Both the position numbers and the translations under genes were made by a program. Under the pieces are notes generated by a model, which was given only the letters and a program-made list of their open reading frames with translations, searched no databases and was not told where the DNA came from. Shown in pieces: positions 2,330-49,787 of a stretch of DNA of 64,000 nucleotides; within the stretch, counting starts at the first letter, position 1, and each line of letters opens with the position of its first letter. The DNA comes from Hyphochytrium catenoides (taxonomy: Eukaryota > Protista > Hyphochytriomycota), in NCBI GenBank assembly GCA_900088475.1, contig FLMG01002637.1, forward strand, positions 1-64,000, written 5' to 3'.

Positions 2330-5300
2330 TTAGACATTCTCCACTCCGAGAGGCTGGAGCCCGTTCCTGGTAGGGGCTGCAGCTGGAGGAAATAACACTT
2401 GATCACCTTCTGGAGCTGCTCCAACCTTATGACTATTTCCCTTTTCCGCCGCAGAGACAGCAGCGTTCTGGGATGCCCGGATTCCCGAAGAGGCGCTGGT
2501 AGAGTTCTTGCGGTGAGTGATGAGAGAGGCTCTGTGCCCTGCTCCCGCTGGACTTGAGCTTAAGTCCATGATGCTACCTCCTCTGCTAGGGGCTGATGCA
2601 CTGGGGCGTTGTACGCTCGCCGTTGATGCTTTTTTTGTTGACGTTCTTGATTGTGGGTTCTTGTACAGGTAGAAGAGCTTTGGAGTCATTACTAGTACCA
2701 CGCAGATCAACGCCACCAGGCTGCAGGACACAGCCAAAAGGAGAACCCTGATGGTGGGTGCGGTTCTGATGCCGAGAGTCAGTAGGAGGGTCAACCCACC
2801 CATCAGAGTGGCGTTGTAGAGTCCAATGGCCAGCTGCTTGGCCTCCGAATAGTCCTCGACAATGTGCCAAGATTTTACTGCGAGGTATATACCGACGCCC
2901 AGTACAAGCCCCTTATAGCTCAGCATCAGATACAGTCCACTATTATCCCCATAGTCGCACACTTGCCTTGGAACATTCCCCAGTACTTCTAGAAACTCGA
3001 AGGACGTCGTAGAAGTCATTTTGGATCCAAACTGCCAGCAAATAAGGATGACGACATCTACCAAGATGAACATCGACGTCTCCGATGCCACCCGAAGGTT
3101 AGATACGACGGTCCGCTTTAGAGCTTTGCCGCCAAACAGTGTGTACACGCGCTTGAGCTTCATAAGGAGCGGGGCAAACAGAGTAGAGAAGCTGAGGCTG
3201 ATGACCCAGGGTCTGCGCACACAATGGACACTATCATTGGGCCCCAGCAATGCAATGGAAGAAATAGTCAGGATAACGGCTCCAATGATGAAGAGGATAG
3301 TAAAGTTGACCTGTGACGCGACCAGGGCCTTGGAGTACCGATAGTAGAAGGTGAAGCCTAGGAATGGCAACAAGACCACGAGACACATGACCACCAGAGC
3401 GATGACTCCATAGCCCACAGAAGATCGTAGAGGCACAAATTCACAGCCAACTTCAATGTCCTCAATGAGATCTTGACCGCCCAGGCAGCTTCTGTTATCT
3501 TTCCCGCCTTTCCAAGCAAACCGCGCCACCATGGACTGTTCACGACACTCTGACAGCTGATAGACCATGTCCTCTCGCCCGCACGGAGGCTGTGGGGATA
3601 GAATGGAAGTTTGACCAATTGAAATGCTATTAGCGATGGGTCTTAGCGTAGCTTGCGCCAAGTCATGAGATAGCCCTGCCAGACTGTCGCTAAGGACATT
3701 CTCCATCAGCCATTCCAAAAACTTGGCTATATATGTTGCGCTTCCCTCTGCATCAGCACTCCAAACGCGCTTAACCACTAGGTTGTACTCGATAGTCAGC
3801 GGATAACATCCTGTAGCGGTAAGATCGTCAAAGATAACGGCGTACGGTGATATCTGGCGTACTGCCTTGCCTCCCGCGGATTCAATGCAACGACTCATGG
3901 ACGAAAGGAAGGGAACGAGTTCCGTCCCATTGGTGTTAGCAAGAGCAATGATCGACAATTTTTCGATCGTTTCTTCTTCAGGTCTGGTCCACACTGCTCC
4001 AAAGGTGCCTAGGATACTCTTGACGGCTCCACGTAATGCCCGCTCCGAGGTCATTTCTATCACGTTCGTTCGGAAGGTGCGCAGGAGGTTGAGATTACTA
4101 GTTTTGGAGAAGATAGCACTGAACTCCACGCTGATTCTTGAAAGGTAGCTGCATATGCACTTTGATATCTCACTCGCGCCGACATCCACCACTATCGTAA
4201 TGTTGACGCTGGGTAGAGGACATCCTGGGTTTAGCTCTCTGAGTTTAGCGTCATCCCATCTGACGATGTTTCCTAAGTAAATATCTACCAATAGTTCTGG
4301 TGTAACAGTCAGTTTCTGCACATCTCCGCCTAAGTTGGCGATAAGGGCAATAGTTCCTACAAAAAGCGGGGTGCTTGTGATTTTTTGATCCTTGACGAGG
4401 TCCATGATGATGTCTTTGGTGGCACCAAAGGCAAATCCCTTAGTGGACACAAGCCCCATTTCTAAGTCACCAAATGAATCAGAGACAAGGAACTCCCACA
4501 TTCGTTGACTCTTTTCATCCCAGCCGTGATACGAGACCAGGTTGAAGGGTGTCAGAACACTGAAGCTGTCGGCTACGACCTGCATTGAACTCTGCACGAA
4601 ACTTGGATAGCCGATGTGAAGGTCACTATCTGCGTGAGCGTCTCTTCTTGCTGACGACAAGGAGCACCGTCGCCCTGACCCCATACAAGTACATAGGGCC
4701 GAAGGAATCCCGACACAGTTTGGGACACACATGACAGTTTCTGAGATAGAGAAGACCAGTTTGTGACGGGAGAAGTCGTTGAGCATGGCGTACCCAGAAG
4801 CTCTGGCCATCTCCACTACCTCCCGACTTTCAAATGTCCACCGTAAGAAGTCCACCAAAGCTTTGCGATGCTTGCAATCATCACGATGGGTTCTTCCTCG
4901 TACTGCTAGATAGGAAATGGAGTTGATGGGCCAACCTGCCGGAGCAATTGTGTCTACGGCAGTGACATTGTATCTGCTGTCAAATATGCCTTCAATGGCC
5001 ATCAAGGCGTTCATAATGGTCTCGACAGAAGCGCTGACTGTGGCATTCTCCTTGTTGATGAGCTTTGCGCTTGTCAAACCCCGCTCCATGGCCTCCGTGT
5101 GATACATAAACGTCAGTGAATAGGGTAGCATCGAAAGCTGCAAGAGTCCAACATAGGAGAGGTTTAGTTATCTGGTGGTGAGGCTAGTAAGGGGCGAAAG
5201 TATACGTACTGCAGCGGTTCTTCCATCTAGGCCTTCTGGGGAATAAAAGACGCGGGTATCGTTGCTTTCATGGCAGGTAATGCTTCTGTAAGGGATGCCA

Positions 5301-5971
5301 GGGGACTTGGGTGCTTTTGTGACTGTCCCTTGACACCATTTTGGGAATGCCGATCGTCCTATGCTCTCCTTAAAGCCAGTACTGAATTCACTCAAGGCGG
5401 CAGTGAAGACATCGGTGACACCGAGTGCAATTCCTGGAAGGATCAGCTTTATTGGCTCTGGAGGCAAGGTTATCATAGGATTCAAAGCGACAATGGCTGG
5501 GTCATCCCATTGCAAAATGAGACCTTGGAAGATGTCAGCCAGGACTTTTCTTGAAAATATTATTGTCTCTCCCTCTCCCAGCTCCGCAATGTTGATGATG
5601 GGAACCACAGCTGTGACCGCCAAAGGGATTAGGAACAGATCTCGATAAACCTTGAAATCTTCCAGTGGTACCATGTAGTCTAGCACAGCAAAATGGATAG
5701 TGCCGTCTACCAGCAGCTGCTTCCGTGCCAACATATCGCCATTGCTAATGAAGGCAAGCTCGACCTCTGGGAGGTCCGACGACTTCGTAGCAACGCTGCT
5801 GTACATTCGTGAGAGCCGGGGCATCAAGGAGCCTGTGAGGGTTCCGCCGGAGGCCTTCAGCTTGGACCTCTTGGTACCTGCAGCGGCAGAGAAAAATGGT
5901 CGAGAATGATTCTCGACGCCCAGAGATATGAAGGATAAGGTCAGGCACGCTATAAAGGCGGCGGGCCCCAT
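2330..5971 (-). CDS. PstS-like PBP x2 + Cys-rich module + class C (7tm_3, GABA-B-like) GPCR, copy 1; exons 5971-5210 and 5137-2330 (~1189 aa)
   Basis: A phase-0 intron 5209-5138 (GTACGT...TTGCAG) joins the 267-aa and 937-aa ORFs. PstS-like motifs: ASGGTL, HFAVLD, PLAVTAVVPIINI, VLADIFQG..WDDPAIVALNP, GWPI.S.SYL. Second PBP: PLFVGTIALIANL, DIYLGNIVRWDD, CYPL. Seven hydrophobic helices with class C motifs ASQVNF, LLMKLKRVYTLF, YSEAKQLAIGLYN, PKLF. Confidence 0.9.
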
Positions 5972-7927
5972 ACCTAACGACTCACACCACGTAGCAGCTC
6001 TACTGGTTTGATGATCAGAGTTATAACTCTAAAGAAGGTAATGTATTTGTGGCGGCTGAGCTCAAGCGTAGGTGGCTCTCTGAGTGCCGCTCCGCTTAAA
6101 TACGATTGAACATAGGTCTTAGTGGGGACCATAATCTGGAGGGCGTCCTATAATTCTTACTTCTTGTATGCCTTCTATGCTAAGAACGGAGAAGAAAGCA
6201 ACAGAGATCATGATATACCCAGTCTCAGTGGCAGGGGCCTATTTGAACTTTCAAGATCTGTGTCCTCTATCCTGATGGAGGGCCCGTGAGCAACGCAAAT
6301 TTACTTTACAGGCTTAGTGACCGAGAAAGAGATGTGGAAACTAAAAGGTCATACCTTATCTTGACCAAAAGATAGGTTACGAGGTAACAGACACTGATCC
6401 GGCTATTATCATCACGACGGGATGAGGATAGGATGGGGTTATAACGTCTACTTCTACTATGGGAGAAAGCATTGACAGGACATGATGGCGGTAAGCCTTC
6501 CAATTGGCACCAGTGATTATCTGAAAGTCATTGCTTCTTCTCCTCACATATTGAATCTGACCCATCCCATCCTATCCATGCTAGCATACCGGATGATACT
6601 ACCGTGGCTTGAATGATGGATGGGAGGGAGAAAGACGCGACCTGACGCTGCCATCCACTATTACACATCAAACAACGTCAGAACAATGTGTTCTTTCCGC
6701 AATCTTAATATTCTCCTGCGGGAAAGAGCCTAGCGGCGATAACAAGCTGCTTAAGATGAGATGTTCATCTTCTTCAATTGGAAGCAACCCGACTCGACTG
6801 ACAAGTCAAGACCTCTGCTGGTCAGTTGCGAAACGCACCGGTCTTGTCCTGTCATCCTGAAGTTTGTCGACATTTATTATCATTCTCTTTGCGGAAGAAA
6901 GAGAATATGGGGACGGGCAAAAGTACTTTGTTGAGTGCCCACATAGTCTTTCGACCAAGATAATAACTCCAGCATGAGGTTAAATGGCCTTGAAAGGTGT
7001 CATTATAACGGAGGAACGATGCATGCCTTGAAGGAAGGAAGGAGAGAGGCACACTATGGGGGAGATCGTTCAATCAGAAGATGGCACCATTCTCTAAGCT
7101 ACCTTTGTCAAGCAAGCGAGGTTGATCAGCGTTGATGATGGCACTCTAAGGCGACCCACCAGGTGACGTACCTTATGATTCAGAAGTGAGCGACAGGGAG
7201 AGGAGGAGAAAGTGTCCGAATTTGACAGGGCGATCACTAACAGGTTCGTAGTAACGGCCGATTGATCGTTTCAGAAGTAACAACGGATGGTTGAACGCTG
7301 AACACTACCGCGCGCCTCCGTATACCAATCCATGTAGAGTGGTGGTTGGAGCAAGAAGCCCATGGAACGAAGAGCTAACTAACCTGATAATAATAACCCA
7401 TAATCTTCCTTATCTATGATATCGAAGAGCCTGTCTTTGATGACTACCTTCTTCTGATGACGTTGATAAGGCGACGACACCACTGGTGCTAGGTGGAGGT
7501 ATTATCAGCTTCTGGTGGGATGAGAGAGTAAGCGGAGAATAGAGACGAGGACAGGAAACTGACTCTTATATTGTGCCCTTATTGAAGGACGACGGACTGC
7601 TGGCTACAGGTGATAGGAGAAAAGATGATCAGAAATGTTGACGAGCAGCCAAGTGTCAAGAGTGGACACCTATCCCGACAAAGACAGGGAGCACCCTATC
7701 AGTTAACCCCTCAAATAAATCTATTACGAGCACGGCATGAGGTCAAGCTTGTGCAGGTTTCGATAGTCGTAGTGGCAACTAAAGACGCAAGGCATCGTTC
7801 CAGGCCCAATTTTGATGAAGGAATTGGTTAAGGCTTACAGTACTGATTCAAAGAGAAGCCTGCCTAAACAGGGACTAGAAGGAACTGCCAACGGCTCAGC
7901 CAGCAGGCAGAACGATAAGGGGTGAGA

Positions 7928-7976
7928 GACTTTTCAGCACTCCTTTGACTTTCCAGCACTCCTTTGACTTTCCAGC
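7928..7976. repeat. 19-bp tandem duplication (~2.5 copies)
   Basis: gacttttcagcactccttt / gactttccagcactccttt / gactttccagc. Confidence 0.9.
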
Positions 7977-8356
7977 TAGAAGTGCCATCCTAGCGGGATG
8001 ATCTTCAACGAGCTGACGCTCCCTAAACCACATCGCAATCGGTGAATGAGGTCTATTAACAGGTTTCTGAATCAACGAAGTATGAAGACTAGGGAACGCT
8101 AATGGTGCCGCTTTAGCAAATGGTCCCTAATGGCCACCTACACTTTCACGATGACCACCTGAACCTTGACCATAGCGCCACTCCTCAACAGAAGGCCCGC
8201 AGGATTGTTGAGAAACGCAAGTGATACCGCCCAAGATTAGACGGAACATAGCAGTACATTTTATTAGTGCGCCCCCCTGTGCAGTGTGTTGACAGACAGA
8301 ATTCTCTGGTGAAGAGCCCTCCTAATCTGCTGTTGGCCTCCTCATTCGACTCTAGA

Positions 8357-11300
8357 TTAGGCATTCTCTTTTCCCGCTAGCGAAGAATCAGGGCCAGGTA
8401 TGTCAATAGAGTGATTTAGGGGAGCGCCAGTTACATCCTTCTTTGACGACGAGCTTTCCGCATTCTTTGAAGAGATAGTCTGTCCCTGTTGGGCTGGGTG
8501 CTCCTTCAGAGCTACAGCACCTATAGTAGCAGAGCTCTTCCGATTATGGAGTGATGATGATGATGGATTAACTGCAGAAGTGGAAGATACCTCCAGCATG
8601 CTCCCCCTAGCTCGGTTCGATCCTGTTGTTGGCCGCGGCTGGTCACCAGTAGCAGTCTTCTTTGTCGACGTTCTGGAATGTGGATTCTTATAGAGGTAGA
8701 ACAGTTTTGGAGTCATCACAAGGACCACACAGATGAAGGCAACGAGGCAACAGGATGCTGCCAAGAGAACAACCTTTGTGGTAGGGCCAGTAGTGATGCC
8801 CAGAGCTAGAAGGAGGGTTAAACCACCCATCAGAGTGACGCTATAAAGCCCAATCGCCAATTGTTTGGCTTCCGAATAGTCTTCAACGATGTGCCAAGAT
8901 TTCACGGCAAGATATACTCCTACCGCCAGGACTAGACCTTTATAAGCCAGCATCACATACAACCCTGCGTTATCACCATAGTCACAGACTTGTCTTGAGA
9001 CCTGACCCAGAACTTCGATGAACTCAAAGTCTATTGTCGAGGTCAATCTGGAGCCGAACTGCCAGCTTAGCAAAATAGTGATGTCCGCCAGAATGAAAAT
9101 AAAGGTCTCTACGGCTACTCGACCGTTGGAAACTACGACGCGCTTGATCGTTTTCTGCCCGAAGAGAGTGTATACCCGCTTAAGCTTCATGAGGAGAGGA
9201 GCAAAAAGCAATGAGAAACTGATGCTCAAGACCCAAGGACGCCGCACACAGTTAAACTCATTGTTTGGTCCCAGTAAGGAAGTCGAGGAAGTCGTTAAGA
9301 AGATAGCTCCCACGATGAAAAGGAGGGTGAAGTTGACCTGGGAAGCGATGAGAGCCTTTGAATGCCGGTAGGTTGAATGTGAAGCCAAGGAAAGGCACAA
9401 GAATCAGAAGGCAGAGGGCGACCAAAGAGAACACAACGGAAGCCACAGATGAGTCTACGGGCACGTATTCGCAGCCGATCTCAATATCTTTGTATAGGTC
9501 CTGACCACCCAGGCAGGTCTTGTTGTCTTCGGCGCCCAACCATGAAAATCGTGCCACCATCGCTTGTTCTCGACATCCTGACAAGGTGTACGCTATATGC
9601 TCGCGGTTGCAGGGCGGCTGTGGAGTTAGGACGGAAGACATTCCGAGAGAGATGCTGTTCGCAATGGGCCTCAACATCGGGTACACCGTCTCATGTGGAA
9701 GGACCGAGAGACTCTTTCGAAAGTCACTTTTGAGGACCCAGTCTACAAATTCGGCAACTTTTTGCGCCTTTGAAGCGGAGTCGGAGCCCCAAACACGCTT
9801 GACCACAAGGTTGTACTCCTTAGACAACGGGTAGCACCCCAAAGAAGAGAGATCCTGGAACATGACCACATAAGGGGATAAGGGCCATACAGCGTTGAGT
9901 CCGAGCTTATCAAGACATCCTTCCATAGACGATAGAAATGGGAGCATTTCAGTGCCGTTAGACATGAAAGTAAGTACTGGAGTTACGAAGGTTGAGGCCT
10001 CTTCGGGTCTTGTCCACACAGCACCGAACGCCCCTGTCACACTCTCAACGGCACCACGCAGACCCCGCTCCGAAGTCATCTCAAGCACGTTGGGTCTGAA
10101 GGTTCGTAGTAGATTGAGGTTATTTGTAACTGAGAAAATGTCCCTGAACTCATTGCTCACTGTCGAAAGGTAGCTGCAAATTATTCGGGATATCTCAGTA
10201 GCTCCCACGTCAACCACCAGGGTAATATTGCTGTTAGGCAAAGCTAACGAAGGGTTCATCAGCTCCTTGAGGCTCGGATCATCCCATGATACGATTCTTC
10301 CTAGGTAAATGTCAGCCAGAACCTGTGGTGTCACGCTGAGTGTTGATACCGCGTAGCCTAGTAGGTTGAATATCAGCGCGACTGTGCCAACGAAGAGCGG
10401 GGTGATGGTAAGTTTTTTATCGACAGTCAGCTGTGTTATGAGTTCCCTGATTGACGCGGTGGAGAGGTAAGTTCTCGTGGACAGAAGCCCCATAGAGAGA
10501 TCTCCATACATATCTGACGAGATAAGCTCCCACATGCGCTCATCCTTTTCGCGCCACCCGGGGTAAGGGGTGAGATGGGAAGACGTAAGCGCTCTAAAGC
10601 TGTCTAGGATAACCTCCATCGAGCTTTGAATGTAATCAGAATAGCCTAAGTGGAGGAGGTTTTCTTCTTGATCCGCCGTCGCTGCTAGAGAGCACCGTCG
10701 TCCTGAGCCCAAGCAGGTGCATTGCGCCACAGGAACTCCAAAACAATTAGGCACACAAGAGACCCGTTGTGGCAGAGATGACACGATGCTCTGACGAGAA
10801 AACTCGTTCAGAACCGCAGAGCCGGATTCTCTAGCTAACTCCACGAAGTCTTGACTTGCGAAAGTCCATCGAAAGAATTCGACCAGTGCACTGCGTTTCT
10901 TACAGTCCCCAATATGCGTCCTCCCTCGTATGGCCAAATAAGAAACAGAATTGATTGGCCAGCCTAATGGAGCGGCCGTGTCCACCACGGTAGCATTGTA
11001 CCTTGCATCGAAGATGCGCCTTCCACAACCATCAAGGCGTTGGTGATAGTGTTCACGGAAGGGCTGACGACGTTGTCGACTTTGTTGATGAGCTGGACAC
11101 TTGAGAACCCACGCTCCATAGCTTCCGTGTGATACATAAACGCCATCGAGTACGGTAACAGGGTGAGCTAGTTGTACATGTAGAGCAAGGGGGCAGGGAA
11201 CTGTTAGAGACAACAATAAGAAAACAAGCTAAAGTTTAGGGTGAAGATTACCGCTGCAGTTCTGCTGTCGAGGCCTTCAGGGATATAATAGGTGCGCGTC

Positions 11301-12053
11301 TTATTTTCCTCTGTACAGGTCACCACTGCGTAAGGTAGTCCAGGTTCCCGCGGCTCCTCTGCGGCTACTCCTTGACACCATTTGGGTTGAGTGGAGCGTC
11401 CAATTGTAGCCCTGAAACCTGCACTAAACTCGCTTAGGGCCGTTGTGAAGACTTCAGTAACACCTAACGCGAGCCGAGGCAAGATGAGTCTAATGGGTAA
11501 TGGGCTCTTGCGGCGGAAAAGCTATTGTCGGATTGAGGGCGATGATGGCTGGGTCGTCCCACTGGACAATAATGCCTTGAAAAATGTCCGCCAGGACCTT
11601 CCTTGAGAGTGAGATCATATCTCCCTCTTCCAGTTCTGCAATGCTCACAACGGGCACGACCGCTGTCACAGCTAAGGGAAACACCATGAGGTCGCGGTAG
11701 AGCTTGAAGTCTTCAGGTGGGAGCATGTGATCCAGGACTGCAAAGTCAGTGGATCCTTGAATAAGTAGCTCTTGTCTCCTCCCTGCAATTGATCCACTAC
11801 CCTCATACTCGATGTCAACTTGCGGCAGATAGGACGAATTCGTTGCGACGCTACTGTACATACGGGCTAGCCGAGGGAAGAGTGGAGCGGTCAGGGTCCC
11901 TCCAGAACCTCTTAGTTTCCATCCACTGATAGCAGAGGGACCAATAGCTACATCAGAAAGGGCAACACTATTCTTCGCCGCAAGGTAGGTAAGTGCAACA
12001 ACCAGCCAGAGGCTGGCTGTCGCAATCCTATTGTCACACAATGTACCCCTCAT
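8357..12053 (-). pseudogene. PstS-like PBP x2 + class C GPCR, copy 2, frameshifted (pseudogene or consensus errors)
   Basis: Colinear with copies 1 and 3 across ORFs 12053-11490, 11482-11204, 11146-10964, 11216-9258 and 9400-8357. Same intron position (11251-11168, GTAATC...TAG). Frameshifts: 7-bp duplication taatggg x2 at 11491-11504, extra GC at ~11016-11019, extra base at ~9371. Confidence 0.85.
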
Positions 12054-15000
12054 TTGTCTCCTCCGTCGCCGTTATCAGAAATGGTTTGATACCAGAGGAA
12101 GTACGCTTAACAGGAGAAGGCAGATGAATGCCATGCACTACTGGGTTCAGGAATTGTAGACAGCGCCCAACAGAAGAAACAATCGTGCTAAGAGCCTTTC
12201 GGGGGAAGGTTATATGGTTTCTGTCATCTGCGAAACTTGAGGGGAGGAATGTAGAAGCTTCTCTGTGGTCCGTTGCCCCAGCTCTCTACAGCCAGAGAAG
12301 AAATGATGTGACGGGAATAACGAGTGGCCTCGGGCAGATTTGAGGAATCTTCAAAACGAATCGTAATAGGCCGGAGAGCTGCACATTGGAGGCTACTATG
12401 TACGGAGCTCACTCCTTTGCCATTATTATTGCATATGTGCCTGCTGATGGCTGTCATATGATGCTATTATTAGAATAGTATGATGACTGTCAATAAAGAT
12501 CACAGAAGAAAGAACAATACGTCTTCTGTTCCATGTTAGTAGCCACGATGTGGCAGACGAGCCGCCTGGGTACTTATAAGATAACTCCCATCATACAGGC
12601 CTGCCATCTACTTACTCCCATCGCCGAAGAGGGTACATCATTAGAAAAGTAAAGAGGTTGGAGGAGATAGACGCCAGCACCTTGCGACTTCGTCTCTCAG
12701 CTTGTCAACCTACCGAGGTGACCAACATGACAGCAACTGAAGCGAGCAGATCACCCCAGATGTCGGCCAAACGCTGCATGAAGGGAGTGTCCCATCTTCG
12801 TACCTCTTCCGTCCATTAATTGTCCTGTCGCTCTTACGTAGTAATGGAGCATCATGAAGCCTACTACTAATGACCTTTGCTTCTCCTGCTGGTCGACCGA
12901 AGTCGTTTCATTGTCTCACAAAGCTGAGGAAAGGATAGATAAACACTGGAGCTTCATGGACCAGCAGCAGGTGCCGAAGAAGAGAGCAGCTGATCATCTA
13001 CTCTCCCCATCCCATCCATATCCGGAGTAAGCACATCTCCACCGCCCTGCTGTGTGTCCAGCGCCGCTGCTGCATCCTCTTGATATCCTAGCTCTCAACT
13101 GAATCTAGGTGACATTAGAGGCGGCCCCTCCTCTTCCTTCCTGCAGTCCGTTACACAACCTCCAGGTGATGCTCTCCAGGGCACTTGGGTGTGTCTATCT
13201 CTCAGGAGGTGTGAGTATGCAAGGGCATTGATGGTTCCTCCGTTTCTGGACGATGGAACCGTTGATAATCTCTTTCTCCCTCCTCTCTGAGTCTATTGCA
13301 GGATAGTGGTGGCTTCTGGTCGTCTACTTGGCTCCGTTCTTAGATGAAACGGGTATGCAGAGAGACGTAAGCCGTGCTTGGACCACGTCTTGGAGCAGAA
13401 GTACCATCATATGATATGGCCTCGTCGTTGATTACACAGATGACGGGGTTTTCTTTCGTAAAACACTTGCAGAAAGAGAATAGGAGGTAAACATGGAGAG
13501 AAGGACTGCCAGAGGAAGGATGGAAGACACAAACGCAGGGAAGGGCAACTAGTGAGGCAGTTAGTAGTGCAGCAGGCGGCTCCGCCAAGCAGGAGCAGAA
13601 GATAGACTGCAAAAGAAAAGCGCAGCAGCTACAGGAGGGTGGTGACAGTAGGGTAGCTTGCGCATTGTAGTCTGAGGAGAGAGGGAAGAAAAACGAACGA
13701 AAGAGGAGGAGCGTCTTTATTAAGACGAACCCTCCTCATACTGAAGAAATCGTCTCTCGCCGCTCTGGTCCGTGGGTGCTTCAATCATTTTGGTGTTCCG
13801 TTGTAAGTTCCTCTGTCCCTTGTTCTTCCTCCTTCCTCCATTTCTTCGCTAGCTCCACTTTCGCATACTTCTGCGCTGTCCACCTTGTTTTTCCCGTCGT
13901 CCGCAACTCTCATCCTTCACTTCCTTCGGCTACGCCGCCATTCATATCCATTTCGTGTCCGTTATTCACAAGCAGCAGACTGGTCACAGTGCTAGCACCA
14001 CTGAAAGGAGGAGGAGAAGTCACAGCCATGTGTGTTTGGCACCAATCAGATAGAGTCCACAGAGCTCTAATAAGCTCTTTCGTAGTAAATCCAGCTCTCT
14101 GTTACTACATCGTTGTCCACAGATTGAGATCTTAGCACACATGAGGAGACTAAGGACCCTTTCATCATCTTCCTCCGGAAACTCTAAGTGTATGTACTCT
14201 AAAGTACCAATGAGGCTGCTGAACTCACTATGGGTTACCACCATTGTGAAGTGTAAAAATGCAGCAGCCGCCAAACGAGTAGGGGAAAAGCAATCCGGGA
14301 TCGTTTGGTTGACAATTATCACCTATGGCTCCTGCTGCACCAAAACGGCGTTGTTTGTACTTGTGAGCCACAAGATTGACCACATCCGACTGAGTTATAC
14401 TCCTTTGACGTATGCGACAGTGCATAGAGGTGATAAGTGAGAAGCTCCGTTCCGTCGCACAGTCCATTAAGGCCTTATGCGGATCGTTGTGATGCTTTGA
14501 CATGTTCAAGTGAGATGTAGTGTCTCGTGATGAAAGACGTGTCCTCTGCATATGTCGACGGCTATGATGAAGATCGAAGCTTCAGCCCCTTCCACCACAG
14601 TGTTCGAAGTATAGTAGACAAGATCAAGCTACTACTTTAGAAGTATAACACTCTCTCTGTCCATTAGGAGAAGGGATTATGTCATCTAGCTGCTCTTCTC
14701 AGACTATTACTATGAGTTAGAGCTCTCCCGTTAGCAAGTCAACTACCCCGTCAGATGATTGGAGAGTCTCAACCACTAGGCTTTACTACTCACTCAGCAT
14801 AGAGTGTAGTAGCCCATTCTTCCAGACATCAGTATGTCCTTTCTGATTGCAGATGTGGATCAGCGGATGTCTATAAGGTCGTGTCAGCTGTTAGAACTAC
14901 GCTCTGAGATTTTATTCTTGTCTCTCGTTGTTTCACGGCTCCATGGTGGGGGCCATTAGTATCATTTGGTAACAGCGGTCTAGAAGACCGAAGTAGAGAG

Positions 15001-17858
15001 TTATAGTGACTTCATTCAGTCAGGGCTGCCAAGGGGAGATGAGTGGTGCATAGCATAGATAGGAGATGAGACCGCAAGAGAAAGAGAAGACGCAAGTAAC
15101 TACCACTCATTGCTGAACCACAGGTCTGCGGGGTTTAAGAAGGCAGTAGTGAGACAGAGAGAGGACTCGGGCAAAAAGGAAGGCTGCCAGAGATGAAAGC
15201 TTTGGTGTGCCTACAATATATATGACGATATCCATTTAGCGAAAGAGATAAGGTAGACTGGCAGGCCAGAATGATAATAGGTAAGGTGAACGAGAAAGGC
15301 ACGTCCTGCGTCAAAAGAGCAAGGGACTCATGGAAAGTTCAGCGATAGAATATGGAAAGGACGGTGGCCTCGGTTGCAGACAGACGAGACAGAGCCTGAC
15401 AGTGAAGACGAGATGGGAGCATGAAGAGAACATCTAAGCAAAGGCGAAGGACAGAAGGTAGTAATGCTTGGCATCGAGGAAGATTAAAGGACGAACGACA
15501 GACGTAAGCGAAGGCTGAAGTATAGGAGACGAAGGTGTGAAGAAGAGCAGACTGACAAAAATGAACGACGGAGACCTTAAAGAATAATGCAAGTCAGGAA
15601 AAGTGGACGAGAGAGAAGATCAAAGCGCAGAGGAAACTGGACAAGAGAGAAGATAGACCCAGCCCCGAGGAGATTGAAAATTATTGAATTGTCGAAGGGT
15701 AGGGAAAGTTGAAAGGATGTAGAAGAACAAAGGACACTGCCCACAGTCCACTTCGTGTGCTCTATTTACCGCCAGTTGCTCGGACGGAAGTAGCAGAACT
15801 AGGGTTTAACTTCTTGTGCGGAGAGGTCTTCACAAAGACAAGTTCCTTCTTGAAGTGCTGTTGACATGTATACTCGCTATATAGTACGGTACTCTCTCTC
15901 CGCTTATCTCTTGGAGCAAGTGCGACGATCAGGAGAATGGATGATCCTCCTTATGAGGCTCCCTGGATCTGAAGCTTATCAGTGTAGCTCTTACAAAGGA
16001 GGCCACTCATAGTCTCTAATCCTATGCCCTTAATCATTCTGTCTCACACTTTATTCTCCAGGAACTTACAACTTTTCTTTTTATCTCTCTCTCTGCTCGT
16101 TGACGGTGGGCTGATCTCCTTCGCCAAAACGGATACCCAGTCAATTAAAGATCAAGCGTAGAGAAGAGTCGCAGCGAAAGCGGGCCCACTAGATGAACGA
16201 AGCGAAGACCACTTAGCTTCTGGACCCCTTGGACCAGCATCACCCTAATGAGCAAGCTGCGGATGACTATCAGCCAGTCAGGACCTATTGATGATGAGAC
16301 TTCATCATAGGAGGAGGATCTGCACAGTCGATAACCGCTCTTCTTCCTCTGAAGCAAGATATTATTGAACCTATGAGGTGGGTCGCCGCCTTGTTTTTCC
16401 TCGAACTCCTATCCGTTACAAGCCCCCTCTCTCGCTCCCTACCGTTAGCGGCTCTAACGCAGAAGCTTGCCTTTTATAAAAAATAAGCACAGCGTTGTTG
16501 GCTGTCATCAGAGAGAAGAAGTGCTGAAAGACAGGCTGTCATCCCACTCTCTCACAGGCTTCTTAGTGGCAGTGGATGATGAACGGTTATTGCAATGCTT
16601 TTCTTTCCTCTTCGCTCTTCTTCGTTCGGATGATGAGAAGATGGCCAGGTAGAGCGGCGTCCGTTGTGGCCCCTCCTGTCACCTCAGGAACTAAGGCTTT
16701 ACTAGAAGGAGACGAAAGTGTACCTTATTAGTCTTTTTAGGTTAACTGATGGTGGGCCCCAGCAACCGCTTGACCTTCACACGGCTTCCATACTTTTGGC
16801 GGTGTCTGTTGATAGGCGGAAGGGAAAGTCCCGACAGTCTGCATTTGCTTCGATTCTCCTTCAAAGTGTTCCTCCTTAACACCTTGCTCATCTCGTAAGA
16901 AAGGAAACTGAACCTTCCCACCCTTTTTTTACCCCTCACACTTCCTTTCTTTCTGTGACTTGAATCTAGGAAGCGAGGATGGTCACCGAACGAACAAGGA
17001 ACCTTAAAAGTAACCACCCGTGTCACATCCTAGTCATGTTTAATATTGGTGGACCGAGAGGGACAGTCCAGGCCATCTTCTCTCCTCCCGTGGTAGTGTC
17101 TTCTGACTGCTAGTGGTGAGCCAGTGGAAATAGCAGCGGTTGTTATTTCCACCATCTACTATCTCTTCTTCTTCCAGCAAGACCCGAAGTAGCAAAGCCT
17201 GCAGCATGCACTGGATACTTCCAAGAGAACCGTCATATTGACTACTACTAAGTGCTACAATATGCTGAAAGAATCAAACGGCTGTTACTTGCAAGCGGTA
17301 CGACCATCAAACCGAGGCTAGCTCTTGACACGGTGTTTTTGCTGCTTCATCATCAAATCATAATAGGCTCTGGCATATCCACCTTGTTAAAGCGGAATCT
17401 GCAAGGATGGGACGCAAGATGGGAGGATGATTAAACGCATACATTTCGGGGCACACTAACAGCCCTTAGTATTTAGAGGTATATTGCTCATTAATAACAC
17501 TTTTCTTAGGAAGACTTTTGCAGGGCCGACTCGCCTAACCGGGGGGTGGCATTGGCCCTCGGTACATAGCCCTAACATCTCTTCCCCATAGGGACTCTGG
17601 GAAAGAATGGTCAGTCCGGTCCGACGAAGCCTGGCCCAAGACGATCGGCTTCCTTGCTTTGGATGGTGAGGGGCAGTGTTTGTCGGAGGAGGGTGAGATA
17701 ATAAACTGCAGTTTTAACCTCTTGTCGTGTGCTTCCGTATGATGGACACGATGAGGCACAGGGAGCATCTCATTTGATGAATCCCCGGCTGACAGTCCAA
17801 TACCCTGGTGGTTGAGACATCTTCAAATAGCGAATCTCCTCACCGTTTAAATACTACC

Positions 17859-20800
17859 ATGAGTTTCCCACCTCCTTGCCTGTTGTTCCACTCGTTTCTC
17901 CTCATTGCTACCGTTGTGCAATCTTATAATGCTATGGCTACCTCCCTGGCGGATATGGATCACCATGCAACGCTGAAAGGTGCTGGAGGATCGATGGGTG
18001 CCCAACTATTCTCTAGGCTTAACCGTATGTACGATAGTGCAGTACCTGATCTAGGTCTTCTCGGAGTAGATATTATTTACGAGAGTACGCAAGGGTCTGT
18101 TGCAGGGAGAGAGAAGCTGCTTGCTGAAGGTTCTATACATTTCGCTGTGGTGGATTACCAGCTGCCTCAATCAGACTTCAAATCCTACCGAGACCTCTTC
18201 GTTGTACCGTTTGTAGCCTCTGCGTTGGTCCCGGTAATCAACATCGCAGAGCTGGAGGATGGACAAAGGATCATCCTGTCGAGAGAGTTACTGGCTGGCA
18301 TATTTATGGGCACGGTCACTCGCTGGGACGATGCGGGCATTGTCTCCTTAAACCCAACAATAGTAGATCTACCACCAGAGCCCATTAGACTCCTCCTTCC
18401 CACTGGCACCCCCAAGAGTGCAGAGATCTTTGCACAAGCCTTGAGCTCTTTCAGCCCAGAGTTTGCAGGTACCGTGGGCCTGACCCTGAAACCCCGATGG
18501 TGCAATGGCGACGCTGTGTCCACAGCCGATCCTGGACTTCCATATAATACTGTCAATTGCAGCGAGGGCAATACCACCAGCAGGCTGTACTACACGGCAA
18601 CTGGCAAGGAAGGTTTAACTGCAGCCGTAAGTCCGGCCTACGCCTTGTGTGGCGTAGCTGTATTCATGCCGTCCATCGTTTTAATCAGGTCTTAGACTTC
18701 AGTTGATGACCGCAGTTGCGCCTCCTGTCGCTTTTTTTCTCAAACAGCAGTTTCGCCAATGATACTGACTTGACCTTTTCCCGTCACCACAGTTCACGAT
18801 GCTGCCCTATTCAATCACCTTCCTCTACTACAACGAGGCCATTGAACGAGACTTTGCAAGCGCCATGCTTATCAATAAGGCAAATGCTACTATTAGTGCA
18901 TCTGTGGATACTATCACCAACTCTTTACTAATGGCTGAAGGAACTTTTGACACGCGGTACAATGCCTCTGTGCTTGACACTGTCGCCCCACGCGGTTGGC
19001 CAATTGTCTCCATAGCTTACCTCACCATTCGGGGAAGGACACATTTGGGTGACTGTCAGGAACGAAGGGCCTTGGCCGAATTCTTTCGATGGGTTTTGGT
19101 TAGCCCACAATACGTTGAGCTTGCACATAGTTTAGGATACGCGGTGCTTAGCGAGCACTCCCGCAAAAGCATTGTGGCGGATATTGCCAGCCAGGTCTCC
19201 TGTGTGTCTAACTGTGTCGGTATCCCCAAAGCCCTGTGCTCCTGCATTGGGACTGGTAGGCGTTGTCGTAAGGCTGTAACACCCTCTCAAAAGGCCGAAG
19301 TGTTCTATCTAGGCTATCCTAGCTTCGTCGAGAGTTCAGTTCATGTTGTCCTGGATGGTTACAAGGGTCATAGCTCACATTCGGTAGGTAGGTATCCTGG
19401 ATGGAGAGAAGATAAAACTTTATGGAGTGCCATTGCCTCAGACCTCTATGCTGACATCAGCATGGGTTTGGTGTCGTCAAAGCAGATGTTGGCACATTTA
19501 GCGACATCACCCGAATCCTCGTCCAGCAGTCAAGATATACTTACTAACGGCGAGGTCGCCCTAACTCCTTTTTTCGTGGGGTCTGTGGGCATCGCTTTCA
19601 ACCTCAATTCCTTACGCATGGTTACTGTCACGCCCGACGTGTTGGCAGATATCTATCTGGGAAAAATAACTCTATGGAATGACCCAAGGATCCAGCAGCT
19701 GAACTCTGATGTATCTCTACCGCCCATCAACATCTCTATCGTTATCGATGCCGGGGCCCTGGAGATATCTGAAGTTCTCATCACATATTTGCGGAATGTC
19801 AGTCAAGACTTTCACGATGCCATGGATGCCAACAGTAACCTCAACCACCTGCGTACCTTTCGATCTCATGTCATTGAAATGACGTCTGAGCTGAGCTTAC
19901 GCGGGGCAGTAGCGGCCATAGAAGGAGCGATAGGTGGGGTCTGGATAAGAGAAGAAGACGAAGAAGATATCAATGTGCTGTTACTGCAGAGCGCCAGGGG
20001 CATCAAGATGGATCCGTTTCTCTCTTCCATACGGGCCTGTTTTGACGCTTTAGGCTTGCGTGCTGTCTATCCCATCAACCGCTTTGCGTCTATCTTTGAC
20101 AACGTCGCTAGAAACGATAGGGATTGTTGGCCGCTCGTTGTGGAGTATAATCTAATGGTCAAACGGGTGTGGAACGCGGACGGTGCTTCATCGACGGCCC
20201 AGGAAGTGGCAGATTTTTTACAATGGTTTATTGGGAATGATCTGCGGGAGGCCCTTGCTGTTTTAAGCCCAGACGTAGCGAGCTTCGTAATGTCCCCCAT
20301 CGCACAGACCATCTCTCTGGGTGAGGCTTCAATTCTGTCTCCTCAGCCGCCCTGTAGCCGAGAGCATATGGTCTATACGTTGTCCGCTTGCCATGAGCAG
20401 GTAATGACTGCGCGTATCAACTGGGCAAGTGGAACTGAGAGCCGAAGCTGCCTGAATGGTCAACCGTTATACGACGACATCGAAATTAGCTGTGATCATG
20501 TTCCTCTGGGCTCATCGGTGGCGTACGGGATCATCGCGCTCGTAGTCATGTCATCCGCCGTATTGGTCCCGTTCCTAGGTTTTACCTTCCATTATCGATA
20601 TTCGAAGGCCCTTGTAGTTTCCCAAGTCAACTTCACTCTTCTGTTCATCATGGGAGCTACGTTCCTGGTCATCTCCTCACTTTCATTGATAGGACCCAAC
20701 GACGAGACGAACTGCATAGTGCGTCCTTGGACACTCAGTATCAGCTTCTCCGTGCTCTTTGCTCCCCTTTTGATGAAGCTTAAAAGGGTCTACACCCTAT

Positions 20801-21582
20801 TTGGACAAAGGACTTTGAGGCGAGCCGTGGTCTCAAACCTTCGAGTGGCGGCTGAGACCTCTGTATTTGTTCTGATAGACGTTCTTATCCTACTATCCTG
20901 GCAATTTGGCTCAAAAATAAGCTCCACAACAGCTTTTGAGACTATAGAGATCCTTGGTGATGTTCCTAGGGAAGTGTGTGACTATGGGAACAATGCTGGC
21001 ATGATCGTTATGTTGACCTACAAGTGTCTGGTCCTCGGTGTTGGAGTGTACTTGGCGATCAAGTCTTGGGAAATTGTTGCTGACTATTCTGAGGCCAAGC
21101 AGCTAGCAATTGGACTGTACAACGCCACACTAATGGGCGGCCTAACGCTGCTTTTGACCATGGTGATTGATACATCCATCACCATCAGGGTGCTCCTTCT
21201 GGCTGTTTCTTGCTGTATGGTGGCACTCATCTGCGTGATACTGGTTATGACACCAAAGCTCTTTTACTTGTACAAGAATCCAAACTCTAGAACATCTACG
21301 AAGAAGGCATCAGCAGCGGGACACCACCCTAGCTTCTCCCGTCCTCCTGCTCGAGGAAGCGTCCTTGACATAAACGCTAATGTCAGACCGCAGCCCATAC
21401 TGTCAGATCCGACATCCACTACCGGCCCTGAGACTCCTGCACTTCTTTCTGACCCAGGTACCAAAGTTCAGCCCAACAAGACGGTGGTGGAAAGCGCCTC
21501 ATCTGTTGGGGAGGTAAATGATGGAGACAAAGTCTCATGCATGACAGGTCCTCGGAGGACCCTTAGCCCTGCGGTCCCTTGA
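17859..21582 (+). CDS. PstS-like PBP x2 + Cys-rich module + class C GPCR, copy 3; exons 17859-18626 and 18793-21582 (~1185 aa)
   Basis: ATG 17859 opens a signal peptide (MSFPPPCLLFHSFLLIATVVQS). Phase-0 intron 18627-18792 (GTAAGT...CACAG) at the same protein position as in copies 1 and 2. Motifs LKGAGGS, GSVAG, FAVVD, WDDAGIVSLNP, GWPI, DIYLGKITLWNDPRIQQLN, LLMKLKRVYTLF, YSEAKQLAIGLYN. Confidence 0.9.
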
Positions 21583-26769: not shown

Positions 26770-28323
26770 ATGGGCTCAATAAAATCCTTTATCAAAGCTC
26801 TCGGGGCCGCTGTGCTATTGCTCGCATCAGCAGTAGATGCTCGACCTAATGGTGCCCCACGCTGTGCCATTAACCCGGATGCAATCTCTGGAGCTCATCA
26901 GTCCCAACCAGTGGATCTTGGAGCTAAACTGGTGGCCTCCTCTGCGACGTACACTCCTGGGCAGGTTATGGAAGTTACCGTCGAGGGCCCTGCGGAGTGG
27001 AAGGGTCTTCTTTTATATGGCGCCCAGGGCGAAGCAGAAGTCGGTCCTGGCAAAGCCGATGGCCGCAAAGCTCACGTCGGAAAGTTCATGGAGATTCCGC
27101 AGAACTTCAAGGCCCAAGCTGTTGATATCTGCCAGACTGCGGGGATTACCAATGAAGCCGATGGCTCAAACCCGGTAGAAGCCTCAACTATCACTCACGC
27201 AAATGGCCAGGCTAAGGGTGGAAAGGTCGTCTTTAAGTGGCAAGCCCCTGCCAATAATGTGGGACCCGTCAGCATCGTTGGAGCAGTGGCCATGGGTGGC
27301 CCCGGTGGCAAATGGGGTGTTCTGAACCAGATTGTCCTTCAGCCTGCTGGCGGAGCAGCCAATGGTGCAGTGGGAGGTGTGGTCCAACAGACAGGAGCTA
27401 AAGTAGATGTGAATGGGCAAGCAGTCATTGACATCCTGCCTCCAGGCAGCGACTGTGGCTGTGGCTTTGGCAAGGCCACTCAGCAGCAAACTGCAGGGGC
27501 ACAGCAGCCCAACGGAGGTGTTCAGCAAACTACAATGGTCAACGGCCAACAACAGCAGCAGCAAGGCGGGGTGTCAATTCACGGAGCCTTTCAGGCTAAC
27601 ATCCAAGGTCCTTTCAATGGCTCTTTCGAGGAGTGGCTTATCCTCATGTTTGGCACTAGCGATTGGGGAGTCCTAACCCAGCAAGGCGGCGCGGTCGGCA
27701 CTACGGTCCACATTGGGAACTCCATGGGTTCGTCTTCTCAAGGTCCAATCGGCTCCAGCACAGGAATTAGCGCCGGAGGAGTGCAGTCATCTACAACGGC
27801 CGGTACTGCTGGTAATGCACCTCCACAGCAAGACTCTCCGTCCTCGGGCTCTGCCAGCACAGGTATTGCTGGTAATGCACCCTCAAAGCAAGATAGTCCC
27901 TCTTCTTCGGGTTCTTCCGGCTCGCCATCCGCATTACCGAGTGGCCCGGTTCAACAGCAAGGTGCTCCCGCAGGAGAGCCATCTCCATCGGTGAGTGTTC
28001 CAGCCATTCCTGGCGTTGGCGCTGGTGCCAGCCAACAGCAGCAGAGTGTAGAGTTGCCTACAGGAGGGGCAACCTCTGGTGCCTCAGCACCTAGCAGCAA
28101 CGCTCCTAGCAAAGCTTCTGGCGCCCCTGTTGGCTCCGGAGGGGCGTCCGCTCCCGCCGGAAACCCTATTCTTAACGCCGGTGCAGCTCAACAGGCTCCC
28201 GCAGCACCTGCCGGTGGCGCAGGCAATGTTGGAACGGTAGCTGTGAGCGACGACATGATTATCGACTCTAAAGACATCGTAGTGGAGGACACCTCGGGAG
28301 CTGGCAGGCGTCTTCGGCATTAG
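26770..28323 (+). CDS. Secreted Reeler-like domain protein with Gly/Gln/Ser/Pro-rich tail (517 aa)
   Basis: Signal peptide, then Reeler hallmarks RPNGAP-x-C...H, YTPGQ, WKGLLLY, HVGKF, STITH, FKWQAP, GPVSI. Intronless. Confidence 0.85.
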   Translation: MGSIKSFIKALGAAVLLLASAVDARPNGAPRCAINPDAISGAHQSQPVDLGAKLVASSATYTPGQVMEVTVEGPAEWKGLLLYGAQGEAEVGPGKADGRKAHVGKFMEIPQNFKAQAVDICQTAGITNEADGSNPVEASTITHANGQAKGGKVVFKWQAPANNVGPVSIVGAVAMGGPGGKWGVLNQIVLQPAGGAANGAVGGVVQQTGAKVDVNGQAVIDILPPGSDCGCGFGKATQQQTAGAQQPNGGVQQTTMVNGQQQQQQGGVSIHGAFQANIQGPFNGSFEEWLILMFGTSDWGVLTQQGGAVGTTVHIGNSMGSSSQGPIGSSTGISAGGVQSSTTAGTAGNAPPQQDSPSSGSASTGIAGNAPSKQDSPSSSGSSGSPSALPSGPVQQQGAPAGEPSPSVSVPAIPGVGAGASQQQQSVELPTGGATSGASAPSSNAPSKASGAPVGSGGASAPAGNPILNAGAAQQAPAAPAGGAGNVGTVAVSDDMIIDSKDIVVEDTSGAGRRLRH

Positions 28324-29480: not shown

Positions 29481-30293
29481 CTACTTGGTCAGCTTGAATG
29501 ACTGCGGTAACACTAGACCCGTATCTTCAGCCAGTTTCATGTGATTCATTACCACGACCACTGCGGCACTGGCAAATTCTCTTACTAGCGGGTTGAGAGT
29601 GGTAGATCGTACCTTTCCAATGAGCGTAAAGACTTTCCCATGCGCGAAGCGGATGTTGTTGGCAAAGGCAACGTCAAAGTCATCACCCATTTTGCCCTGC
29701 ATTTCCGTCAGGAATGCTTGTTGTTCAGCGTTTGGCATGCTGGGCAGGAGAACTCCAAGTTTGTCTGCAAGGCAACGCACTTGCTCGTCCAGGTCGAGAT
29801 GATTCTTCTCAATAGTCTTCGCTGCTGCCTTCACGAGGGCGGAATTGCCGCGCTGCAATGCTTGCTGACTGGCAGGAGCCTCCCAAAGTCCGGCTTGTCT
29901 CACCTTCACGATAAAATCGATGTCGTCAGCGCTGAGGCCCAGAGGATTGGGCTGAAAATTGGTAAGATCTCCACTGGGTGCTGCAGCCCCCGCAGCTCCT
30001 GTGGCAGCAGCGCCGCCGGCAGTAGGCGGGAATGGGGAGAGAACTTGTCCGCTAGGAGGTGGTGGTGCAGCTTGCAGGAACCGTTGGGTGGTGACGGTAC
30101 CATCAACGCTACGTTCAGCAGGCAGAGGATGAGTGAAACCGACTGCCAAAACCACAAGAGTGACGGCGGCCAGCGCCACGCCAGCCACAGTGTAGCGCTT
30201 CGACTTCATCAGTTGTCGGAGCGGCAAGGGCTGTCGCTGTTGCTGAGAAGGTTGGTTATAAGCCAGCTCCAGATCACTGAGGTTATTACTCAT
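29481..30293 (-). CDS. Membrane-anchored DUF4142-like (ferritin-like fold) protein (270 aa)
   Basis: N-terminal TM/signal anchor, Pro/Ala/Gly linker, then DIDFIVKVRQAGLWEAPASQQA...H..LD.QVR.LA.KLGV.LP..PN.EQQ...FD..F.N..R.AHGKVF, which matches the actinobacterial-type DUF4142 pattern as I recall it. Confidence 0.75.
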   Translation of the reverse strand: MSNNLSDLELAYNQPSQQQRQPLPLRQLMKSKRYTVAGVALAAVTLVVLAVGFTHPLPAERSVDGTVTTQRFLQAAPPPPSGQVLSPFPPTAGGAAATGAAGAAAPSGDLTNFQPNPLGLSADDIDFIVKVRQAGLWEAPASQQALQRGNSALVKAAAKTIEKNHLDLDEQVRCLADKLGVLLPSMPNAEQQAFLTEMQGKMGDDFDVAFANNIRFAHGKVFTLIGKVRSTTLNPLVREFASAAVVVVMNHMKLAEDTGLVLPQSFKLTK

Positions 30294-49000: not shown

Positions 49001-49787
49001 AAGGAAGGTGACAGAGAAGTGAACGGTAGAGAGACAGAGGGACAGAAAGAGACAAGCAGACGCAAACAAAGGACACCCAAATGTACCATCAAAGGGAGAG
49101 GGTAGACGGAGACAGAGCGTCGGAGGAGATGAGAAAACCTGGAGAAGAAGGGCATTCAGAGAGAGAAAGAATCAGAGGAAGGGATGTGAATGAACGTTAC
49201 TCCCTCTGCACCGGATCTCCCCTATTTTCAGCCGCAGCTGCACCAAAAACTGCAGTATCCGCCTGGTCCTCTGACTCTGCCTCTCCCTAGAGACTTTGAG
49301 CTCTTGCTTGCAAAGACTCCTTTAGCATTCTGATTCTTGTGCATGGCGTTATGATCTTCCAAGTCATTGCACAGAGGAAAGAGCCGTTGTCCACCCCTGG
49401 TGGTATTGAAAAGGCTCAGGAGCCACTTGGAGCCAGCTCTTTTCCAACCATCACTATGATAGGAAGCCTCCTCTCCGCCCACGATCTGATCTGTCCCCAA
49501 ACTCCGCTTGCGCTTGTATAATAGTTCTTATGAGTCTTCCTCTTCAATTCCCACTCACTCTTCTACTCCTCTACAAAAGACCAGCTGAGGCGTGATAAAA
49601 AGCAGTCACAAGTAATAGCGAAACCCCTCGTAGTGTGACTGTTCACCCTCACAGCCTGCTAAGTTTCACTCACAGCCGGGCTGTCAGCCGTCACTCATCA
49701 AATTTCCGCCTACTGGCCACCTCTCACCAATCTACTCTCAACCAGTGTAACAAAGAAGAAAGCACGTCGTTCTCTCAACCACAGACG

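Follow-up and report, generated by a model that had tools for sequence, protein, structure and literature searches.

A cluster of class C GPCR-like receptors with paired PstS-type domains and altered predicted phosphate pockets in Hyphochytrium catenoides

We analyzed a 64,000-nucleotide stretch of the genome of Hyphochytrium catenoides, hereafter called the window (assembly GCA_900088475.1, contig FLMG01002637.1, positions 1 to 64,000, forward strand), which carries three paralogous genes, g1, g2 and g3, for proteins resembling class C G protein-coupled receptors (GPCRs). The layout of g1 and g3 comprises a signal peptide, PstS-like domain 1, PstS-like domain 2, a four-cysteine (4-Cys) module, a class C seven-transmembrane (7TM) domain and a disordered tail. 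The reading that we favor, and consider probable, is that these genes form an old cluster of paralogues within a family of tandem-PstS class C GPCR-like receptors, that the family senses phosphate, and that the window copies lack the canonical phosphate site. The architecture and family assignment of the window genes are put forward with high confidence. The architecture is known but uncharacterized, and the locus is a divergent new member of the family.

Ectodomain, stalk and membrane domain

A sequence-only reading of the window had proposed that the ectodomain is built of two tandem PstS-type domains (type II periplasmic binding protein [PBP] fold, Pfam clan CL0177) and not of an ANF_receptor domain, and searches of Pfam, NCBIfam and the PDB, together with Foldseek, bore this out. 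Pfam PBP_like_2 matched the first exon of all three copies, and no Pfam match to ANF_receptor, Peripla_BP_6 or NCD3G was found in the window copies at an E value of ≤0.01. Domain 2 was missed by Pfam alone at this threshold and was resolved with NCBIfam. The PstS model TIGR00975 matched exon 1 and, twice, exon 2, and the two stretches in exon 2 (E values of 7e-28 to 1e-33) correspond to the remainder of domain 1 and to the second domain; in g1, residues 254 to 482 of exon 2 align to model positions 69 to 286 and represent domain 2. The TIGR00975 scores, 78 to 117 bits, lie under the 205-bit equivalog cutoff, which marks the domains as related to PstS and not as equivalogs. For both domains, the sequence matches in the PDB were to PstS proteins only.

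Comparison with PstS structures, which had been suggested as a check, also supported the PstS fold. The AlphaFold2 (AF2) model covered g1 domain 2, the Cys module and the 7TM domain and was built from 87 aligned sequences; its mean predicted local distance difference test (pLDDT) score was 89.6. When domain 2 of this model was submitted to Foldseek, it matched PstS/PhoX proteins of E. coli, Xanthomonas, Burkholderia and Mycobacterium (template modeling [TM] scores of 0.70 to 0.78; E values of ~1e-12), and its type II PBP fold was superposable on the PstS/PhoX proteins of E. coli and Xanthomonas with TM scores of 0.72 to 0.78 and an E value of ~5e-13.

Each PstS-like domain carries a cysteine pair that is conserved family-wide, C342/C391 (16/16) and C671/C698 (43/43 and 42/43). 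The cysteine linker between the domains, described earlier as a common feature of the paralogues, is mostly lineage specific: of its cysteines, only the first, C391, is shared with relatives, and the four further ones are exclusive to the window paralogues. The ectodomain also bears six or seven N-glycosylation sequons. The 4-Cys module forms beta strands upstream of TM1 in the AF2 model, and its cysteines are conserved in 63 to 78 of 69 to 80 aligned relatives, including relatives that have no PstS domain.

The membrane domain was matched by Pfam 7tm_3 in g1, g2 and g3 (E values of 3e-28 to 2.5e-30; 95 to 106 bits against a cutoff of 33.5) and was modeled as seven helices with pLDDT scores of >90. 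Foldseek returned GABA-B, GPR156, CaSR and mGlu receptors (E values of 5e-12 to 1e-9), with GABA-B and GPR156 as the best matches. The class C hallmarks of g1 are two cysteines (C893 in TM3 and C981 in extracellular loop 2 [ECL2]), a lysine that closes TM3 (K914), a glutamate in TM6 (E1019) and a Pro-Lys motif in TM7 (P1073-K); all of them show conservation of at least 90% in an alignment of 87 relatives. The designation of this region as a GABA-B-like class C 7TM domain is upheld by the 7tm_3 match, the hallmark residues and the structural matches.

Relatives, binding pockets and proposed function

To collect relatives, 1.84 billion cluster representatives were searched exhaustively with HMMER, and 3906 matches were obtained at an E value of ≤1e-3. 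Identity to the relatives was 26 to 31%, with a top value of only 31%, and word-indexed protein searches, a filter for which the family is too divergent, yielded one relative each. An exact look-up of the window open reading frame (ORF) products in a collection of 15 billion proteins returned no match. Approximately 45 of the best 150 cluster representatives contain one or two PstS-like domains followed by a 7TM domain. Named members include Plasmodiophora brassicae CEO97692 (P0028 in our set), a Mallomonas annulata protein and a complete transcriptome ORF. Many relatives are metagenomic, some of them auto-named [quoted passage not shown] (JGI), and one lies on an 80-kb eukaryotic metagenome contig beside kinase, kinesin and SNF2 genes, where it is not clustered. 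In the ESM Atlas, auto-named clusters with 7tm_3 and PBP_like_2 come from Chlorophyta, Discosea and Chytridiomycota. The closest relative found, P0157, is 27% identical over g1 residues 37 to 1087 (E value of 1e-112). A full-length model of another relative, P0009, shows two PBP folds, a beta stalk and a 7TM domain (pLDDT of 82; predicted TM score [pTM] of 0.51). The window genes have the features of this family, namely, two PstS-like domains, a Cys module and 7tm_3 in one chain, together with the conserved disulfide cysteines.

In a tree of 81 PstS-like domains, all membrane-proximal domains were split from all distal ones by a branch with a Shimodaira-Hasegawa-like approximate likelihood ratio test (SH-aLRT) value of 97, and free or multicopy PstS proteins fell on the same side as the distal domains. 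The split between domains 1 and 2 across the tree shows that the tandem duplication is older than the family radiation. The domain tree is better read as a single recruitment and then, before the radiation, a duplication within the protein; the earlier suggestion that a PstS-type domain was recruited twice is not supported. A long stem branch, with a length of 1.05, leads to the window domain 1 pair. In a tree of the 7TM domains, the PstS-bearing receptors were strongly clustered, with 14 changes against 32 expected, and did not form one clade; the window pair grouped with P0002/P0157 with an SH-aLRT value of 98.

Several proteins in the relative set depart from the common layout. P0001 (metagenome, 830 amino acids [aa]) has a 7TM domain of the same type fused not to PstS but to a 5'-nucleotidase C-terminal domain (PF02872), an ectodomain that again has to do with phosphorus; a diatom GPCR was drawn with this domain by Port et al. 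(2013). In P0056, P0039, P0112, P0062, P0063, P0089, P0119 and P0120, between two and four PstS-like domains stand in tandem, and a 7TM domain was not detected. Some of these have canonical sites in several repeats, and P0063 ends in a single hydrophobic helix; they may be truncated predictions, or else relatives that are soluble or cross the membrane once. P0003, P0005, P0010, P0013, P0017, P0031 and P0037 carry an insertion of approximately 200 to 400 residues in domain 1 after the N-terminal lobe.

The roles of the nine ligating residues of E. coli PstS (T10, F11, S38, D56, R135, D137, S139, G140 and T141) are established by structural work, and most of the hydrogen bonds are supplied by R135 and the S139-G140-T141 loop. 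We took these nine residues as the pocket positions, with numbering from PDB alignments. A canonical PstS protein among the matches reads SFSDRDSGT at these positions, and in most of the receptor relatives domain 1 has [ST][FL]SDR[DG]SGT. The canonical domain 1 site is present in P0009, P0012, P0017, P0019, P0028, P0030, P0044, P0045 and P0080, as well as in the closest relative, P0157; it has been lost also in other sublineages (P0020, P0043, P0066, P0090 and others). Domain 2 is remodeled in every family member, often to R-D-S-D-T.

The window copies read TLDDPILGV (g1), SMSDPGPKS (g3) and TLSD..GV (g2 pieces) in domain 1. Position R135 is replaced by proline, the Ser-Gly-Thr loop is lost (LGV or PKS) and differs between paralogues, and only T/S10 and D56 are kept, plus S38 in g2 and g3. 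From the alignments, the loss of the domain 1 phosphate site seems to be specific to the window lineage and not a property of the whole family. The domain 2 pockets read SFSADGSEI, SFLEDGLEI and DYMADGTEI, and R135 is changed to aspartate, G140 to glutamate and T141 to isoleucine in all three copies. Because these domain 2 changes are common to all three copies, they suggest a constrained new site with two acidic residues, and, far more tentatively, the two conserved acidic residues hint at a cationic or metal ligand. Since the arginine and the Ser-Gly-Thr loop are replaced and domain 2 is acidic, it is likely that the window receptors no longer bind phosphate in the canonical manner. The phosphate or nutrient ligand that had been envisaged for the window copies is doubtful, the ligating residues being replaced in both domains.

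Most relatives keep the canonical domain 1 phosphate site, and therefore the family at large is, in our estimation, probably an external phosphate sensor. Domain 1 would close on extracellular orthophosphate; by analogy with class C receptors that have a Venus flytrap, closure would reach the 7TM domain by way of domain 2 and the Cys stalk, and the 7TM domain would then activate a heterotrimeric G protein. The window copies, by this scheme, would sense a different small ligand or would act as ligand-blind partners of a phosphate-binding paralogue. A precedent for such partners is GABA-B2, the ligand-blind partner of GABA-B1. We advance only tentatively the fuller proposal that the family is a protist plasma membrane phosphate receptor whose window copies have been rebuilt for another ligand or are obligate ligand-blind subunits of heteromers. 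If the window copies are indeed rebuilt sensors or ligand-blind subunits, they would represent an independent, nonmetazoan reinvention of the GABA-B1/B2 division of labor on a type II scaffold.

The family spans stramenopiles, Rhizaria, chytrids, amoebae and green algae, and its members whose domain 1 keeps every phosphate-ligating residue of PstS make it a concrete candidate for an external phosphate receptor; a 2024 review states that the existence of a plasma membrane phosphate sensor in diatoms is unknown (PMC11448323). The window copies offer a natural contrast set, with the same scaffold, both pockets remodeled and a loss of g2 in progress with segregating alleles. This set is useful for finding the determinants of ligand choice and for asking whether ligand-blind subunits arose outside animals.

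Several points weigh against the view that a phosphate-sensing family gave rise to window copies without the canonical site. The pocket assignments depend on alignment to E. coli PstS numbering, and in domain 2, positions 10, 11, 38 and 56 are aligned less securely, with D56 read as K or A by phmmer versus the hidden Markov model (HMM). Even after remodeling, a pocket could accommodate phosphate, or an ester of it, in a new geometry. The packing between domains is uncertain in the models (pTM of 0.51 to 0.63), and the failure of PstS-bearing receptors to form one clade in the 7TM tree implies some domain shuffling. The splice junctions are predicted from sequence logic and homology. Finally, a literature search found no functional study of PstS-bearing class C GPCRs, in agreement with what the sequence-only reading had said of the architecture.

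Alternative explanations of the window genes were weighed against the same evidence. That the window receptors are ordinary extracellular phosphate sensors, with at least one PstS-like domain still binding orthophosphate or a phosphate ester, is compatible with the retained PstS fold and many framework motifs, with the T10/S10 and D56 residues of domain 1 and with the canonical site being the family norm. However, neither domain of any copy retains R135 or the S139-G140-T141 loop, two acidic residues have been gained at pocket positions of domain 2, and the window domain 1 pair has the long stem branch described above; we consider this explanation unlikely. It is extremely improbable that the proteins are solute transporters in which a bacterial substrate-binding domain hands phosphate to a seven-helix permease. 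Their membrane domain has the class C GPCR fold of 7tm_3: it carries the cysteines of TM3 and ECL2, the PK motif and the positions of the Lys/Glu lock, and in structure it matches GABA-B, GPR156 and CaSR best. Neither a transporter fold nor an ATP-binding cassette (ABC) component was detected. The transporter idea draws on names, namely, the "phosphate transporters" of PMC4815078 for the Plasmodiophora relatives and the automatic JGI name quoted above. The label is unlikely to be right for the Plasmodiophora proteins, because the membrane domain has a GPCR fold.

A further alternative treats the receptors as an artifact: either exon 1 is a gene of its own, distinct from exon 2, for a secreted PstS-like fragment, or every copy is a decaying pseudogene. 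Exon 1 alone stops two-thirds of the way through the PBP fold, and a single PstS HMM domain crosses the exon junction in the spliced proteins (g1 residues 34 to 392 and g3 residues 37 to 395). The intron has canonical GT-AG ends and has kept its phase and position across three paralogues that have reached saturation at synonymous sites, transcriptome relatives are single ORFs, and g1 and g3 have long open frames in which the proportion of nonsynonymous differences (pN) is well below that of synonymous differences (pS). Against these observations stand the clear frameshifts of g2 and the fact that the gene models come from sequence alone, and we regard an artifact as very improbable. The gene models are supported mainly by the HMM domain that crosses the junction and by the conserved position and phase of the intron, and in these predicted models exon 1 and exon 2 are one spliced gene.

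Gene cluster, decay of g2 and neighboring genes

With g1 as the tblastn query, exactly three loci in the window were matched, and neither a fourth copy nor fragments were found in the 5.8-kb spacer between g2 and g3 or in the spacer between g1 and g2. Amino acid identity to g1 was 58 to 67% for g2 and 56% for g3. The g2 and g3 genes are arranged head to head, and nothing recognizable lies in the 5.8 kb between them. The reading frames of g1 and g3 are intact, and that of g2 is broken by frameshifts (Table 1). The location, layout and number of the three paralogues were therefore as the sequence-only reading had described them, but its second copy is not intact, and its "expanded family" is an overstatement for a set of three that includes a pseudogene allele.

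The intron position is identical in g1, g2 and g3 in the DNA alignment. Hydropathy marks residues 1 to 19 of g1 as an N-terminal hydrophobic, signal-like segment, and the tails of the paralogues diverge downstream of a common KNPxSRTSTKK motif. Synonymous differences among the three genes are saturated (pS of 0.77 to 0.80), and pN is 0.23 to 0.31, with g2 showing the same pattern; dS could not be estimated because of this saturation. The paralogues are old and were under purifying selection until the recent decay of g2.

Table 1. Predicted features of the receptor genes and other genes in the window (aa, amino acids; nt, nucleotides)
Feature	Positions	Strand	Description and support
g1	2330-5971	-	Spliced product of 1189 aa
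g1 exon 1	5210-5971	-	Start codon, signal peptide (aa 1-19), N-terminal two-thirds of PstS-like domain 1 (aa 34-254); PBP_like_2 E 2e-9; TIGR00975 E 4e-25, model positions 2-180; PDB PstS E 4e-17
g1 intron	5138-5209	-	72 nt, GTACGT...CAG, phase 0, in-frame stop inside
g1 exon 2	2330-5137	-	Remainder of coding sequence
g1 exon 2, first part	4724-5137	-	C-terminal third of PstS-like domain 1 (aa 255-392); TIGR00975 stretch
g1 PstS-like domain 2	3614-4633	-	aa 423-762; TIGR00975; PDB PstS E 3e-12; AF2 pLDDT ~90
g1 juxtamembrane 4-Cys module	3440-3589	-	C773, C785, C805, C819; beta-rich
g1 class C 7TM	2645-3424	-	aa 826-1085; 7tm_3 E 2.5e-30; seven helices in model
g1 cytoplasmic tail and stop codon	2330-2644	-	Ser/Thr/Ala-rich
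g2	8357-12053	-	Layout and intron position as in g1 and g3; ORF pieces in three frames; pseudogene allele in assembly
g3	17859-21582	+	ATG at 17859; product of 1186 aa
g3 exon 1	17859-18626	+	Signal peptide, N-terminal part of PstS-like domain 1; PBP_like_2 E 8e-10; TIGR00975 E 6e-22; PDB PstS matches
g3 intron	18627-18792	+	166 nt, GTAAGT...CAG; position and phase as in g1
g3 exon 2	18793-21582	+	Rest of domain 1, Cys linker, PstS-like domain 2, 4-Cys module, 7TM, tail; 7tm_3 E 9e-27; TIGR00975 E 1e-33
Reeler-domain ORF	26770-28323	+	Pfam E 1e-6
Reeler-domain ORF	37441-38742	+	Pfam E 2e-7
DUF4142 ORF	29481-30293	-	E 2e-21
RGS-domain ORF	41135-41953	-	Pfam E 1e-8; within 41135-42988
La-domain gene	44674-46058	-	La motif split over ORFs 45663-46058 and 44674-45579
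WRKY19-type zinc finger ORF	49635-50384	+	Two zinc fingers, E 6e-15
Glycosyl hydrolase family 47 gene fragment	59227-59727	-	E 3e-19

Relative to g1 and g3, three frameshifts interrupt g2. A 7-nucleotide tandem duplication (CCCATTA) near 11491 leads directly into a stop; the other two are insertions, +2 near 11016 and +1 near 9371. We aligned contigs from three DNA runs with the same species label (X1, X2 and X3) to positions 8300 to 12100. The likely source run, X1, reproduced the window exactly, including the g2 frameshifts, and a second X1 contig (depth of 225 versus 277) was without the +2 insertion; the +2 site is thus heterozygous in X1. One X2 contig (depth of 25) had as its sole difference from the window a gap at exactly the 7-nucleotide duplication, and in one low-depth X3 contig the sole difference was a gap at exactly the +1 site. 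Each frameshift was missing from at least one contig of the three runs. Assembly error was rejected as their source, since the frameshifts were reproduced in X1 contigs and other alleles differed at exactly those sites. The frameshifts are real, recent and polymorphic. The +7 and +1 changes appear to be fixed in X1, and g2 is therefore nonfunctional in the assembled strain. In-frame allelic indels were also seen in g2, with an AGT insertion behind 8788 in X2 and X3 and a 3-nucleotide deletion at 10359, for which both X1 and X2 are heterozygous, and single-nucleotide polymorphisms were dense. The organism appears to be diploid and heterozygous.

The other genes recognized in the window are listed in Table 1. 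DUF4142 is mostly known from bacteria and stands here in a eukaryotic context. The splitting of the La motif over two ORFs implies an intron within the domain. The RGS-domain ORF lies approximately 20 kb from the receptor genes, with hydrophobic segments encoded upstream of the RGS domain, and its presence indicates that parts of heterotrimeric G-protein signaling are present in the organism.

Comparison with known systems

The sequence-only reading had implied that the architecture was new. The combination of 7tm_3 with PBP_like_2 has, however, been published for Spizellomyces, Plasmodiophora and amoebozoans and occurs in the ESM Atlas clusters. Krishnan et al. (2012; PMC3251606) reported PBP_like_2 on a Glutamate-family receptor of Spizellomyces (SPPG_06488) and pointed out that it falls in Pfam clan CL0177, whereas the clan usually found, that of ANF_receptor, is CL0144. 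Rolfe et al. (2016; PMC4815078) described the "7tm3 + PBP" proteins of Plasmodiophora brassicae under the name of phosphate transporters, and a survey of amoebozoan GPCRs (2023; PMC10445921) listed PBP_like_2 among family 3 architectures. The window genes have in common with this family the tandem arrangement of PstS-like domains, the conserved disulfides of these domains and the class C 7TM domain. The 4-Cys module is shared by the window genes and most relatives and is absent from P0028 in the alignment. The window genes differ from the family in having lost the canonical domain 1 phosphate site and in their four extra linker cysteines.

Non-flytrap class C receptors of other kinds are also on record. 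They include Dictyostelium Grl with a BMP domain, Allomyces receptors with OpuAC, SBP_bac_1 or LysR_substrate, and diatom GPCRs with sugar-ABC-like PBP, Cache or 5'-nucleotidase domains (PMC3251606, PMC3727952); the diatom class C receptors of Port et al. (2013) have other bacterial-type ectodomains, none of them of the PstS type. In these protist and fungal receptors, as in the window genes, the 7TM domain has taken on varied bacterial solute-binding ectodomains. They differ in using other binding-protein families, and none has been described with a tandem PstS pair.

GABA-B and GPR156 are the best structural matches of the 7TM domain and resemble the window receptors in having no NCD3G-type nine-cysteine domain and in the lysine of TM3, the glutamate of TM6 and the PK motif. 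Their ectodomain, in contrast, is a type I Venus flytrap (LIVBP/ANF_receptor), one per chain, whereas the window receptors carry two type II PstS folds per chain and a 4-Cys stalk. With bacterial PstS/PhoX (PDB 1IXH, 8ODS and 5I84), the window receptors share the fold and the framework motif L-x-DI(Y/F)-x-G-x-I-x-x-W-(D/N)D. Unlike these bacterial proteins, they have no PstCAB partner, are fused to a GPCR and have replaced R135, D137, S139, G140 and T141.

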